From Octopus sinensis (lineage: Eukaryota), in the NCBI RefSeq assembly GCF_006345805.1, contig NW_021833062.1, positions 1 to 64,000 of the forward strand: a stretch of DNA of 64,000 bases. Direction: 5' to 3'. The position numbers and the translations under genes were made by a program. Below are positions 1 to 62,810 of the stretch, one piece after another. The notes under the pieces were generated by a model. The model searched no databases. It was not told the DNA's origin and was given only the letters and a program-made list of their open reading frames with translations. Position 1 is the first letter of the stretch, and every line of letters starts with the position of its first letter.

Positions 1-585
1 CAAAACTGCCGACAAGTGGTATAATCACCACCCTGAATCTGTAACTGAAGGAGAAAATGTAACGATTCGGTGGGACTTTACAGTACATACAGACCGAACC
101 ATCAAGGCCAATAAACCAGATATTGTTGTGAAAGACCCAAACAATAAAGTTTGCTTATTGATCGACATGAGCATCCCCTGGGATCATAATATCTCAGCGA
201 AAGAGTTTGACAAGCTCAGAAAATAAAAAAGACCTGCACATTGAAATTGAGAAAATATGACATCTCATGGCGGTTACAATACCAGTTATCGTAGGAGCAC
301 TAAGAATGATCAAGAAGAGAACCGAAAATTATGTGAGAATGGTCCCTGGCTTACCATTCCTGCAAGAAAAGCAAAAGATTTTCTTAACTGGAACATCACA
401 CGTATTGAGAAGTGCATTGTCGATGTGAGAATTATTACTACCCATGTATTTTAATTTAACTTTAAAAAAAATTCACGAACTATTGAGTTTAGTTTATTGG
501 CCTACCGATGTATACTATGAGTTCCTTGCCCTAAGAGTCGGGAAGACACTCGGCAAGAAATGGAAGCAAATTTGAAAGAAGAAAC
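1..585 (+). mobile_element. RLE non-LTR retrotransposon (R4/Dong-like), family A, 3' end
   Basis: Decayed PD-(D/E)xK endonuclease C-terminus (TDRTIKANKPDIVVKD...CLLIDMSIP...KLRK*) plus the family-A 3'UTR ending at AAT repeats. Identical to 45804-46388. Confidence 0.85.
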
Positions 586-599
586 AAATATAATTATAC

Positions 600-1986
600 T
601 AATAATAATAATATCGTTATATCGTTATAACGTTAACTGGTTAATTACTGAAATATGTAAACTTGAGAGAAAAATACGAAAACTGTTGACAATGTATATA
701 ATGCACGACCCTAAGGTAGATACAGAACGACTTTATCTGCCAAGAAAAGAGGGAGGCCGTGTACTTTTACAACTGGCAATAACAATGAAGATTGCTACAA
801 TTGGACTAGAAACCTACCTGAAAAACTCTAAAATTGGACGTTAAAACTTGTTTCAAAACATGAAAACAAAAAAGCATCATACTCTGTAACTAAACAGGCA
901 AAGCAATATCTAAGTGAATTCCGAATACAACAAATTTCGGAATGAGAGTTAGACATACAAGAAACAAGCACCGAAAGAGCTAGGCGCATGAAAACCCGTG
1001 CAAAAACTGCGGCCTTAGATATTCTGAATAATAAATGGCAAGAAAAACATCTCTATGGCAGATACCCAAAGAGGGAGAGTGATGCAGATTTTGACAAAGC
1101 CCTAAAACATCAATGGCTAATAGCCGCTGGCTTAAAATCTGAAACAGAAGGCATTATCATAGCAGCTCAAGATCAATGCCTACCAACAAGGAACTACCAG
1201 GCCAACATATTAAAGAACGGCAGTAGCACAATATATCGTGTATGTCAACAACAAAAGGAAACCATTCATCATGTTGTTTCCAAGTGCAGTCTTCTAGCGC
1301 CTACAGAGTATCTGTACAGGCATGATGGATCTGCACAATATATTCAACAACAATATATTCAAGAACCTGGATTTTCCCCATGAAAAACACTGGTGGGAAC
1401 ACAAAACACCCCAGTGCTTGAAAATGACCAAATCTCTCTCTTCTGGAACTTCAGCATTCAAACTGACAGAAAGATAGATGCAAGTAGGCCAGATATATTA
1501 TTTAAAGACTTCAGACAAAGATCATGCTTCCTCATTGATATTACTGTCCCAATCGATATCTGTCAAGACCTCCCAAAAACTGAGCAAAAATAAAGATCTT
1601 GAAATAGAAATCAGCAAAATATGGAATCTGAAAACTAAAACAATACCTGTTGTTATAAGTACCCTGGGAATGATACCAAACGCGGCTGATTGCTACCTAA
1701 CTCAGATACCAGGAAATCCCAAACTGGCAGTAATTCAAAAGATAGTGCTCATGGGAGCTGCTCATATCCTACGCAAAATACTTTCTATGTAATCTCAAGG
1801 TTTCAAATAAACATAATTCTCGTTTTTTTTAGAAATTCACTAGTAAAAGACCAAAAAGCAAATAAAACATATATATGGCATACTAGGCATAACAGCAACA
1901 TGAACTTCCAACTTATTGTCTCTTGAGGTCTCTGGGTGAGACTTGGAGCCAACTTGTCCAAATATAAAGAAAAAGTCAAGCATAGA
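600..1986 (+). mobile_element. RLE non-LTR retrotransposon, family B, 5'-truncated pseudo-copy
   Basis: Fragments RKIRKLLTM...DTERLYLPRKEGGR (RT C-terminus), GLKSETEGIIIAAQDQCLPTRNY, decayed CCHC, RPDILFKD, LEIEISKIWNLKTKTIPVVI (RLE). Followed by (AAT)n. Confidence 0.85.
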
Positions 1987-2120
1987 ATAATAATAATAAT
2001 AATAACGACATTAATAATAATATTGATAATAATAATAATAATAATAAAATAATAATAATAATAATAATAATAATAATAATAATAATAATATAATAATAAT
2101 AATAATAATAATAATAATGA
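1987..2120 (+). repeat. (AAT)n microsatellite spacer
   Basis: Direct reading of the sequence. Confidence 0.95.
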
Positions 2121-2124
2121 TAAA

Positions 2125-60100: not shown

Positions 60101-60257
60101 ATATAATAATAATAATAATAATAATAATAGTAATAATAATAATAATAATAAAATAATAATAATAAAATAATAATAATAATATAATAATAATAATAATAAT
60201 AATAATAATAATAATATAATAATAATAATAATAATAAAATAATAATAATAATAATGT

Positions 60258-61695
60258 TATAGGAGACTTCGTGCAGTCCTGAAATCTGAACTAAATGCAC
60301 GTAGCAAGGTGTTAGCTATAAATTCCTTAGCAGTTCCAGTTGTTACTTATAGCTACAATGTGTTGAACTGGAATATGAGTGAAGTAAAGAATATAGATAG
60401 GAAAATACGCAAGCTGCTGAGTTGTAATAGGATGCACCACCCAAAGGTAGACGTAGATCGCCTTTACCTTCCCAGAGCCCAAGGAGGTCGAGGCCTGATC
60501 CAATTTGAACTAGCTTACAAAACAACCACAATTGGACTGGCCAAATATCTCGAAATATCGAATGACTGGATGCTAAAGCTCGTGGAAAATCACGAGAGAC
60601 GAAAGAAGCTTCATTCTATCATAAAGGAAAGCAAAAACTTTGCTATTGATCTCGTGCAGGATACCCAAACTGTACAACCCGAGGGAAGTACGGCAACTAT
60701 TGTTGCAAAGAAGGTGAAAATGATGGCAACGAAAAAAGCGCACGAGCAATTGGCTGATCGGTCGGAGGAGAAACCTCTGCACGGCAAATATGTGACCCGC
60801 AGGAAACAAGCTGATGTTGACCAGGAGCAAACCCATACGTGGCCACGGAGCTCAGGGCTAAAAGCTGAGAGCGAAGGTTTCATCCTGGCTGCTCAAGATC
60901 AAAACCTATTAACCCGGAACTACCAGGCCAATGTGATGAAAAATGGAGCAGACCCAAAATACCGATTCTTCAACGACATGATTGAAACAGTGGACCACCT
61001 AATCTCTGGAGGTAAAGTCTTAGCACCAGTGGAGTATAAATTAAGACATGACAGAGTTGGCCAATATCTCCACTGGCTAATAAGTCGGCATTACAATATC
61101 AAAACTGCCGAGAAGTGGTATAATCACCACCCTGAGGCTGTAACTGATGGAGAAAATGTAACCATTCTGTGGGACTTTCCAGTATATACAGACCGAATCA
61201 TCAAGGCCAATAAACCAGATATTGTTGTGAAAGACCCAAACAATAAAGTTTGCTTATTGATCGACATGAGCATCTCCTGTGATCATAATATCTCAGCGAA
61301 AGAGTTTGACAAGCTCAGAAAATATAAAGACCTACTCATTGAAATTGAGAAAATGTGGCATCTCAAGGCGGTTACAATACCAGTGATCGTAGGAGCACTA
61401 GGAATGATCAAGAAGGGAACCGAAAATTATATGAGAATGATCCCTGGCTTACCATCCCTGCAAGAAGTGCAAAAGATTGTCTTAACTGGTACATCACACG
61501 TATTGAGAAGAGCATTGTCGATGTGAGAACTGTTGCTGCTCATGTATTTTAATGTAACTTAAGAAAAATAAAAAAATGAACGAACTATTGACTTTTGTTT
61601 AATGGCCTAGCAATGTATACTATGAGATTCTTTGCCCTAGGAGTCGGGAAGAGATTCGGCAAGAAATGGAAGCAAATTTGAAAGAAGAAAAAATA
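60258..61695 (+). mobile_element. RLE retrotransposon, family A, with uninterrupted 405-aa frame (60309-61526)
   Basis: RT C-terminus through RLE (KPDIVVKD...LIDMSI...KYKDL) without stops. The CCHC cysteines are mutated. Confidence 0.9.
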
Positions 61696-61924
61696 GTAAT
61701 AATAATAATAATAATAATATAATAATAATAATAATAATAATAATAATAATAATAATATTAATAATAATAATAATAATAATAATAATAACACCAATAATAA
61801 TAATGGTAATAATAATAATAATATTATTAATAATAATAATAATAATAATAATAATAATAATAATAATAATATAATAATAATAATAATAATAATAATAAAA
61901 TAATAATAATAATAATAATAATAA

Positions 61925-62810
61925 TGCTGATGTAGACCAAGCAACAACCCATCAGTGGCTGAAGATTTCTGGATTGAAAGCAGAGACTGAAAGCTTCATA
62001 ATAGCAGCACAAGATCAAATCTTGTTTACCAGAAATTACCAGGCTAAAGTTCTCCGAAACGGTACTGACCCTAAATGCAGATTCTGCGACACATTTGACG
62101 AAACGATAGACCATCTCGTTTCGGGATGTCCTGTGCTGACACGAAACGAATTCAAAAATCGCCACGATAGGGTAGGACAGTATATACATTGGAAGATATG
62201 TAAATACTACAAATTCGACACCCCTGCTAACCGGTATGAACACCATCCTCAGCCGGTTGTTGAAGGTAAGGATGTCACCATCCACTGGGATTTTCCAGTC
62301 AACACTGACAGAACGATCAAGGCTAAACGAACAGACATAATTGTTAAAGACAGGGAAGAAAATACCTGCTGACTAATAGAAGTAAGCGTCCCAACTGATA
62401 AAAATGTATCTGTAAAGGAATTTGACAAACTTAGTAAATATAAGGTCCTGGAAATCGAAATACAAAAGATGTGGAATCTTAAAATAAAAACTGTTCCTGT
62501 TATTGTAGGTGCTCTGGGTATGATAAAAAAGGGATGTCAGAAAGACCTAGACAATATCACTGGAGAACCATGTCTCAAGGAAATCCAAAAGATTGTGCTA
62601 ACAAGTATTGCCCACATCCTTAGAAAAACACTATCAATGTAAATGTTTGTGTTTGTATTACATGGAGATATTTCTCTGCTCCCCTCACCAAGCTTTCAGC
62701 TATATTTCAACAACTCTTAACCTTCACTTGCCCTAGGGCGCTGGGTGTGCCCCGGCAAGTGATTGCATCAAACATGCAGATTAAAAGTAAATGACAATGA
62801 TAATAATATT
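61925..62810 (+). mobile_element. RLE retrotransposon, family C, 5'-truncated
   Basis: GLKAETESFIIAAQDQ, CRFCDTFDETIDHLVSGC, WDFPVNTDRT, RLE. 3'UTR identical to 33550-33705. Confidence 0.9.

Follow-up and report, generated by a model that had tools for sequence, protein, structure and literature searches.

A conserved RNA hairpin before the tail of (TAA)n-associated non-LTR retrotransposons in Octopus sinensis and distant relatives

Introduction

Can retrotransposon families whose 3' untranslated regions (3'UTRs) no longer align still share an RNA structure in front of their tails? The question is raised by a stretch of 64,000 nucleotides from Octopus sinensis (assembly GCF_006345805.1, contig NW_021833062.1, positions 1 to 64,000 of the forward strand), referred to here as the window. 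It contains many 5'-truncated copies of retrotransposons that lack long terminal repeats (non-LTR), also called long interspersed elements (LINEs), with features of the type that carries a restriction-like endonuclease (RLE). A preliminary description had proposed that four divergent families of these elements, A to D, share a hairpin of two stems, P1 and P2, at a fixed position in their 3'UTRs. Template choice through a 3' RNA structure is known for R2, L2 and some R1-clade LINEs, and is apparently undescribed for the microsatellite-targeting RLE group that includes Dong. We have found that the hairpin is a conserved and covarying RNA structure, located at a fixed position at the 3' end of (TAA)n-associated RLE-type elements, in the window and in remote relatives of its elements.

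Results

The hairpin in the window

Comparison of the window with itself by BLAST separates four families, whose last 500 nt are 84–95% identical within each family. Between families the ends of the open reading frames (ORFs) are 65–70% identical at the DNA level, and only this coding part aligns, the 3'UTRs being unalignable. A to D are therefore four diverged families with unlike 3'UTRs, as had been proposed, and the sequences quoted in support of that proposal were all found on the + strand where they had been placed. The window contains 16 copies of the hairpin (Table 1), including three of family B that had not been listed before (16685–16721, 36406–36442 and 60035–60071). Four others (46326, 47719, 48830 and 51411) lie inside a 12-kb duplication, so they are not independent and were counted once with their originals. 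In every window copy the hairpin ends 26–40 nt before the tail, a somewhat wider range than the 30–40 nt originally given, and its position is indeed fixed. The sharing of the hairpin is well supported for families A, B and C, whereas family D was missed by both covariance models described below and is backed only through two relatives outside the window.

In most window copies the hairpin appears in the minimum free energy (MFE) fold of the final 120 nt. When the 37–38 nt of the hairpin were folded in isolation, one common layout was obtained for family C, the D copy at 3023 and five outside loci (L001, L004, L005, L088 and L089): P1, a bulge of 3 nt on the 5' side, a P2 of 6 bp, a loop of 5–6 nt, one unpaired base on the 3' side and the closing strand of P1. 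The preliminary description had drawn a 4x2 internal loop, with an unpaired NNAG and a P2 of 5 bp. All 53 distinct matches allow a pair between the G of NNAG and the pyrimidine that comes first on the 3' side (GC in 38, GU in 13 and AU in 2), and the MFE folds use this pair; thus the internal loop is better drawn as 3x1 and P2 as 6 bp. Likewise, the mismatch that had been located at P2 position 3 in family A is an A.A at position 2. The outside locus L078, which has the GGGAA loop of family A, carries U.U there. The A copy at 61629 has an MFE fold in a shifted register, with a bulge of 4 nt, a loop of 7 nt and GAGUC/GAUUC as its stem, and the D copy at 5608, with two P2 mismatches, loses the hairpin in its MFE fold. 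The family C copy at 33630 folds with −24.1 kcal/mol (z −4.2).

The consensus can be described as follows. P1 has 4–9 bp of free sequence and ends in a C-G closing pair; the 5' bulge is 3 nt long, Y-N-A; P2 has 6 bp, the first of them G-Y and the other five free and covarying; the loop is N-R-G-N-N, usually UGGKU, with an invariant G as its third base; and a single unpaired C precedes the closure of P1 on the 3' side. Some 38 nt follow, containing a second small hairpin in many lineages, and then the repeat tail. Among the 53 distinct matches the conserved unpaired bases are A11 (42), G19 (45), G20 (53) and C29 (41). G12 is conserved in 51 of 53, yet it is paired (with Y28), and the closing pair of P1 is kept at C8 in 48 and at G30 in 51. 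The possibility that the 3-nt bulge forms a kink-turn was considered and rejected: the pairs that follow it are G12-Y28 and mostly G13-C27, there is no GA on the 3' strand and tandem G.A pairs are missing.

Covariation and chance

That the stems covary between families had been claimed before, and the covariation is strong in both P1 and P2. In the ungapped alignment A4, the covariation score was 0.957, against 0.248 after shuffling and at most 0.19 when the partner strand was slid. Paired cells made up 88.6% of the same alignment, a percentage that is inflated by the use of a pairing descriptor to pick the seeds; shuffling lowered it to 52.9%, and sliding the partners by 1–3 columns left 41.8% or less. 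Changes on both sides of the pair were found in five of five P2 pairs and seven of eight P1 pairs.

Because A4 had been selected for pairing, we carried out a test that does not require it. A sequence-only anchor, NN[AT]G-N5-NGGNN-N5-YYG, had 42 matches in the 21 kb that lie downstream of ORFs, as opposed to 156 in control sequence totalling 492 kb, which makes it six times denser downstream. All P2 pairs were formed in 26 of these 42 matches, and in only 2 of the 156 controls. As to whether similar folds arise elsewhere, the bare descriptor is not rare by itself, with eight matches on the + strand and four on the − strand of the window against 6.4 expected per 128 kb of shuffled sequence. Their location, on the contrary, is not random: all eight + strand matches lie at LINE 3' ends and at the same distance from the tail. 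Among paired positions G.U (46) is more frequent than A.C (24), which fits the folding of the sense-strand RNA.

Breadth beyond the window

We searched the window together with 87 loci fetched by protein similarity, 340 kb in all, on both strands. A strict descriptor demanding a perfect, contiguous P1 missed many true cases and returned AT-rich false ones, and it was replaced by covariance models. Model R1, built from nine window copies of families A, B and C only, finds 12 window copies and 11 outside loci, all on the + strand, with no match on the − strand of the set. Ten of these outside matches are located just 3' of an ORF, in L011 (E 1e-6), in Penaeus indicus (L001, 2e-4), in Clytia (L005, 3e-4) and in L012, L024, L030, L048, L078, L080 and L040. 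The exception is L016, where the match is upstream of an ORF fragment, at the 3' end of the preceding element of an array. Model R2, based on 35 diverse seeds of the same geometry, gives 76 matches at E <= 1, all of them on the sense strand. With filters off it separates the 12 window copies of A, B and C (E <= 0.012, 17.1 bits or more) from the rest of the window, where nothing scores above 11.9 bits. A correctly placed match of model R2 at E <= 0.02 was found in 50 of 73 evaluable loci (distinct loci whose sequence continues for 90 nt or more past the ORF), and weaker matches or visible variants with other bulge or loop lengths in L007, L014, L032, L052, L069, L073 and L081.

The proteins of the hairpin carriers are only 31–65% identical. 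The carriers come from a shrimp (Penaeus), corals (Oculina and, weakly at E 0.6, Porites), a hydrozoan (Clytia), a starfish (Asterias), a killifish (Nothobranchius, E 0.003) and about 50 metagenome contigs, and the same layout can be recognized by eye in Oculina, Asterias, Nothobranchius and Porites. The Exaiptasia locus (L006) was left out, being a spliced gene model whose end is not at the 3' end of the element. In the Asterias amurensis locus we also noted a match to the histone 3'UTR stem-loop just under threshold (L004:3519-3564, 33.3 bits against a gathering score of 34). It lies a few hundred bases downstream of the element and is unrelated to the hairpin described here.

Family D was not included in the seeds, since MAFFT placed its extra loop base inside P2, and neither model R1 nor model R2 detects it. 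A protein search with its ORF remnant provided closer relatives, L088 (67% amino acid identity) and L089 (57%). These have GCGCA/UGCGC and GCACA/UGUGC, i.e., G-C and A-U where the window D copy at 3023 has A.C, with the CAGAGC loop unchanged, and the compensatory pairs at its mismatch are what supports the family. The loop also retains G at its third position. By this comparison family D is a real but divergent member whose window copies have decayed.

Position, tail and second hairpin

The distance from the end of the match to the tail has a median of 38 nt and is mostly 26–56 nt, while the distance from the end of the ORF to the match varies from −8 to +218 nt. With the first constant and the second variable, the hairpin is tied to the tail and not to the stop codon. 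A repeat tract of TAA type follows the hairpin in most outside loci; others keep the hairpin with different tails, (ATAA)n in L025, (GATAAT)n in L013 and L044, (TC)n in L068 and (AT)n in L069 and L083. The hairpin is thus independent of the sequence of the tail, and these loci suggest that the target repeat may have changed while the RNA module was kept. There is also a subgroup in which the stop codon falls within the hairpin (loci in Table 1). Here P1 takes its 5' strand from the end of the coding sequence, so that translation terminates inside the hairpin, at a stop codon placed in the bulge, P2 or the loop.

More distant lineages have a second hairpin between the first one and the tail, of the form ACC-RGY...RCY-G(U/A)GA. 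RNAalifold recovers it from 24 loci, with four pairs, three of them with compensatory changes, and an invariant CC and G. This ACC form is absent from the window families, where the candidates for a second hairpin are of other types (Table 1). The one of family C recurs as UGUAU/AUGCA in Penaeus indicus (L001) and as UGUA/UGCA in Clytia (L005). A pseudoknot or kissing contact between the UGG loop of hairpin 1 and the invariant ACC preceding hairpin 2 found no support, given that loci with a UAG loop (L054, L056 and L058) keep the ACC and that the UGG loops of the window occur without the ACC hairpin.

Table 1. Copies of the hairpin and associated features. Hairpin coordinates of families A–C include 8 nt of P1 on each side; bits and E values refer to covariance model R2.
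Feature	Position	Strand	Remarks
Hairpin, family A	523..559	+	26.9 bits, E 3e-5
Hairpin, family A	17463..17499	+	21.8 bits; first P2 base mutated G to C
Hairpin, family A	34427..34463	+	30.8 bits; nearest to family consensus
Hairpin, family A	61629..61665	+	22.2 bits; 3' strand CAC to GAT, alternative register
Hairpin, family A	46326..46362	+	duplicate of 523-559, in 12-kb duplication
Hairpin, family B	1916..1952	+	31 bits
Hairpin, family B	16685..16721	+	31 bits
Hairpin, family B	36406..36442	+	degraded; 17.1 bits, E 0.012, filters off
Hairpin, family B	60035..60071	+	22.5 bits
Hairpin, family B	47719..47755	+	duplicate of 1916-1952, in 12-kb duplication
Hairpin, family C	33630..33666	+	cleanest example; 37.2 bits; 8-bp P1, 3x1 loop, 6-bp P2, UGGGU loop
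Hairpin, family C	62725..62761	+	37.2 bits
Hairpin, family D variant	3023..3060 (core 3027-3056)	+	6-nt loop CAGAGC, A.C mismatch in P2; MFE fold; missed by models R1 and R2
Hairpin, family D	5604..5641 (core 5608-5637)	+	degraded; two P2 mismatches
Hairpin, family D	48826..48863	+	duplicate of 3023-3060, in 12-kb duplication
Hairpin, family D	51407..51444	+	duplicate of 5604-5641, in 12-kb duplication
Candidate hairpin 2, family C	33669..33683	+	UGCAU-CAAAC-AUGCA; MFE folds; weak support
Candidate hairpin 2, family B	16723..16736	+	UUGUA-CAAA-UACAA; MFE folds; partly kept in other B copies; weak support
Hairpin 2, ACC form	L007, L031, L036, L040-L058, L064-L083		e.g. L077:3633-3654
Stop-in-hairpin subgroup	L043, L045, L049, L050, L053, L055, L059, L064-L066, L075-L079, L082
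ORF remnant, family A	60309..61526	+	405 aa, longest ORF; reverse transcriptase end, linker, degenerate CCHC knuckle, RLE motifs KPDIVV..LLIDMS..K
ORF remnant, family B	15456..16560	+
ORF remnant, family C	61929..62633	+
ORF remnant, family D	2117..2989	+	C-terminal ~290 codons, 6 in-frame stops
(AAT)n tail of B copy	1986..2123	+	family D ORF remnant from 2117
(AAT)n tail of C copy	33701..33807	+	TRF; next element (A copy) from 33808, tblastn map
(ATA)n tail of B copy	60103..60255	+	next element (A copy) from ~60261
(AAT)n tail of A copy	61692..61925	+	next element (C copy) from ~61929
Chain 1	B copy, tail 60103-60255, A copy from ~60261, tail 61692-61925, C copy from ~61929	+
Chain 2	C copy, tail 33701-33807, A copy from 33808	+
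Chain 3	B copy, tail 16753-16874, A copy from ~16877	+

Identity of the elements

The Pfam family RVT_1 matches the ORF fragment 32377-32907 (E 1.6e-12), and a second fragment, 34704-35228, at E 6e-4 and 20.1 bits, below the 29.6-bit cutoff of Pfam. zf-RVT matches the fragment 2117-2590, and the homologues carry PF00078. The consensus of 29 homologues shows, C-terminal to the reverse transcriptase (RT), a CRxC..H..C knuckle and then RPDI..LLIDMSVP..K..EK..KY, with P303, D304 and K335 invariant, a combination that reads as the signature of a restriction-like endonuclease. A profile of these 29 proteins matches the R2 proteins 9nl3_A (E 2.7e-9) and 9dou_A (E 4.9e-9) of the PDB, from the end of the RT (thumb) to the RLE. 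The same search with the single 405-residue ORF of family A gave no match, so the R2 proteins were reached only by the profile. Homologues were found in Penaeus indicus, Oculina patagonica, Porites lobata, Exaiptasia, Clytia, Asterias, Nothobranchius and many metagenome contigs, and in the databases they are named merely "uncharacterized protein". The RT, knuckle and RLE motifs and the profile match to R2 proteins identify the elements, which are associated with (TAA)n, as RLE-type LINEs. The window families are R2-like RLE LINEs, and their putative placement in the R4/Dong clade would be in keeping with the RLE architecture, the similarity to R2 proteins and the association with (TAA)n.

Architecture of the window

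The window is AT-rich (24–42% GC in 2-kb windows) and has microsatellites throughout, (AAT)n foremost. With a homologue of 704 amino acids as the query, tblastn maps about 20 RT gene fragments, all on the + strand and all 5'-truncated. Every element copy has its start at most about 6 nt from the end of an (AAT)n tract and ends in the next one. The elements therefore appear to be inserted in a fixed orientation in (TAA)n microsatellites and end in (TAA)n, as described for the Dong/R4 clade, and chains of truncated elements, each in the (AAT)n tail of another (Table 1), explain the local architecture. Similar head-to-tail arrays were seen in outside loci, L036 (726-762 and 3615-3651), L016 (70-105) and L015 (3717-3753), where the hairpin and tail of one element are directly upstream of the next truncated element.

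Positions 1-12288 recur in direct orientation at 45804-58113 with 99.4% identity. For this segment of 12.3 kb, possible origins are segmental duplication in recent times, a haplotype left uncollapsed and an artefact of assembly; families A, B and D appear in inflated numbers because of it. Positions 17557-18785 and ~62813-64000 are occupied by a fifth family, also RT-related but more divergent, with about 30% amino acid identity to the others. Directly behind an (AAT)n tail, both copies begin with GGTGGAMTATTTGCGCAGATTGAG; the first one extends to a (CTA)n tract (18786-18968), and neither of them has a match to hairpin 1. Together with a long (GAA)n tract (15244-15441), the (CTA)n tract adjoins (AAT)n tracts, so that the region is a mosaic of trinucleotide repeats. 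Two (AAT)n tracts also flank an insert of about 590 bp (3126-3716, with a duplicate at 48929-49519), which has a 33-bp direct repeat at its start (3126-3192) and neither RT similarity nor hairpin 1. Perhaps it is a non-autonomous element that shares the target. At 29978-30697 the similarity to RT is weak, with 24% identity to the N-terminal portion of P0057, and this is probably an unrelated or much older LINE fragment. A tRNA-like sequence suspected upstream of the tract at 38909 was discarded, as ARAGORN detects no tRNA in the window.

Discussion

What the hairpin may do

Stems of free sequence that covary, a small number of fixed unpaired bases, the asymmetry of the internal loop, a constant spacing to the site where reverse transcription has to begin and independence from the sequence of the tail form together the pattern of a protein-binding RNA. 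We consider that the motif is probably, at a chance of about 0.6, the 3'-terminal recognition hairpin of a large and ancient group of R2-like RLE non-LTR retrotransposons living in microsatellites, mostly (TAA)n. Recognition of the template for target-primed reverse transcription (TPRT) is the best reading of its role, inferred by analogy with R2, L2/UnaL2 and SART1 and by its fixed spacing from the tail. According to this model the RT-RLE protein of the element would bind hairpin 1, possibly together with hairpin 2, through the conserved unpaired bases and the bend at the asymmetric loop, the stems serving as a mere scaffold. The spacer of about 38 nt would bring the (UAA)n tail to the RT active site; by pairing there with the target strand that has been nicked, (TTA)n, the tail would prime reverse transcription.

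Several observations weigh against template recognition and have to be taken into account. The single-sequence folding z-scores are significant only for family C (−4.2), those of B (−1.6), D (about −1.1) and A (about −0.85) being unremarkable; for hairpins as short as these, the folding energy of single sequences is not decisive. Family A retains its A.A mismatch in P2 and may fold in another register. The hairpin is lacking in about 10 of the 73 evaluable loci, for example L010, L017, L033, L037 and L061. All copies in the window are dead, i.e., truncated, with stops and 84–95% identical within a family, and the function proposed here would derive from analogy and spacing. Short interspersed elements (SINEs) that share the tail of a LINE are the classical genetic evidence for recognition of a 3' tail. 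In the window and the loci collected we found no partner SINE with the module, the matches of model R2 being all behind LINE ORF remnants or at the start of a contig (L016).

Among the alternatives, the one that survives best is that the hairpin is functional but does another job in the RNA: formation or protection of the 3' end, export, localization or stability mediated by a host factor, or a part in controlling how translation terminates. The distant subgroup, whose last codons and stop codon are built into the hairpin, makes a coupling to translation possible, and tandem arrays such as those of the window and L036 imply read-through transcripts that would need a definition of their 3' ends. 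However, the window families and their nearest relatives have the hairpin 12–218 nt past the stop codon, so that the link to the stop is not general, and the constant quantity is the distance to the tail, that is, to the site where the RT starts. In addition, no ribozyme or processing motif of Rfam matches the window or 12 of the loci even at E <= 1. We regard such a role as rather unlikely, though worth keeping in mind beside template recognition.

Considerably less probable is a signal in the DNA or in the complementary DNA (cDNA), such as a hairpin of the first-strand cDNA or of the junction that would guide second-strand cleavage or synthesis, or an internal promoter for the next copy of an array. 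It would agree with the 3' end of the element becoming the junction with the target, with the head-to-tail arrangement of the copies and with a palindrome-like sequence that is foldable on the complementary strand too. Nevertheless, an A.C pair would read as G.U on that strand, and G.U pairs (46) are twice as common as A.C pairs (24), so the sense strand is favoured. The conserved unpaired bases (the G-rich loop, the A of the 5' bulge and the 3' C) point the same way by their asymmetry, which is modest and not decisive.

Finally, that the hairpin has no function and reflects chance, unerased common ancestry or the selection of examples is very improbable: the bare descriptor does appear about six times per 128 kb of shuffled sequence, the z-scores of A, B and D are weak and the A4 seeds were chosen with a pairing filter, but a model built from the window alone finds outside members, 76 matches are sense and none antisense, the rest of the 3'UTR is unalignable among proteins only 31–65% identical, every P2 pair has compensatory changes and the selection-free anchor gave 26 of 42 against 2 of 156.

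If hairpin 1 is the recognition element of the template, it could be part of something larger. Hairpin 1, hairpin 2 and the repeat tail might constitute a portable "tag" defining the clade of microsatellite-targeting RLE elements across cnidarians, an arthropod, an echinoderm and a fish, a proposal that we put forward tentatively and hold to be somewhat doubtful. Were it true, about 80 nt would be all that an RNA of any kind needs to serve as template when (TAA)n tracts are the target, in the way that the R2 tag does for ribosomal DNA (rDNA). Moreover, in the subgroup with the stop codon inside the hairpin, termination would release the new protein onto its own binding site, which would provide a physical basis for cis-preference.

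The hairpin is a ready target for binding, TPRT and structural work, because it is small, sharply defined and conserved across proteins that are only about one third identical. It could be a candidate for an Rfam family and a practical marker for annotating 3' ends in repeat-rich genomes such as those of shrimps and corals. Since a minimal RNA tag of R2 already directs the insertion of cargo RNA, a (TAA)n tag with a non-coding target could also be of interest to genome engineers.

Comparison with known systems

Rfam 15 gave no match at gathering thresholds, and at E <= 1 only low-complexity matches to microRNA models were obtained in the window and 12 of the loci, none of them at the hairpin positions. 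In the searchable full-text literature, which does not cover older subscription papers, we found reviews of Dong-type targeting and of how other clades recognize their 3' tails, and no account of a structured 3'UTR in Dong, R4 or their relatives. The preliminary description, which knew of no earlier account of the motif, therefore has not been contradicted by either source. The kind of element is known, and the hairpin itself appears to be new; it is unusually well defined and widely conserved.

Dong elements have an RLE-type architecture. Dong of Bombyx mori, DongAg and DongBg are known (TAA)n-specific non-LTR retrotransposons (cited in PMC3812793), and they share with the elements studied here the (TAA)n association and the type of tail.

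A close known case of template recognition is R2. The R2Bm protein uses only RNAs that carry its 3'UTR, and its NTE-1 helix binds a core of 40 nt made of two stems and a junction with conserved adenosines (PMC10499050). Avian R2 proteins also require a few bases of 3' tail that pair with the primer (PMC13580325). The likeness to the R2 tag (stems P1 and P2, junctions J0/1 and J1/2; PMC10499050) begins with the superfamily, RT plus CCHC knuckle plus RLE, and extends to a core of about 40 nt near the 3' end, two stems of free sequence with compensatory changes and a few conserved unpaired purines where the stems join; in R2, too, a 3' extension matching the target helps priming (PMC13580325). 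On the other hand, there is no similarity between the R2 tag and the new hairpin in sequence or at the level of Rfam. The stems of R2 are far apart in a multi-branched 3'UTR of about 250 nt, whereas here they are stacked in one hairpin of 30–37 nt with a 3x1 loop. The target of R2 is 28S rDNA instead of a microsatellite, and binding is established for R2 and predicted here.

Comparable, too, are the hairpins of the "stringent" LINEs of the L2 clade (UnaL2 of eel, ZfL2-1 and ZfL2-2 of zebrafish, and their partner SINEs). The 3' hairpin of UnaL2 requires its bulge and mismatch (PMC1636434), and the ORF2 protein of ZfL2 binds its own stem-loop (PMC4176376). In both groups a single hairpin stands just before a short-repeat tail, (TGTAA)n in UnaL2, the stem is free and covarying and is interrupted, in L2 by a bulge or mismatch required for mobility, and loop bases give the specificity, or would give it in the new hairpin (PMC1636434, PMC4176376, PMC3747384). 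The L2 elements belong to another clade, with an apurinic/apyrimidinic endonuclease (APE) in place of an RLE, and their consensus is unrelated; their function was proven by retrotransposition, binding assays and SINE partners, while a function of that kind is predicted for the new hairpin. SART1 and R1Bm of the R1 clade and plant L1 need a stem-loop or hairpin of the 3'UTR for a precise start of reverse transcription (cited in PMC3747384 and PMC10499050). These also combine conserved loop and flank bases with variable stems, as the octopus hairpin does, but they belong to APE-type clades with poly(A) tails and their motifs are unrelated to it.

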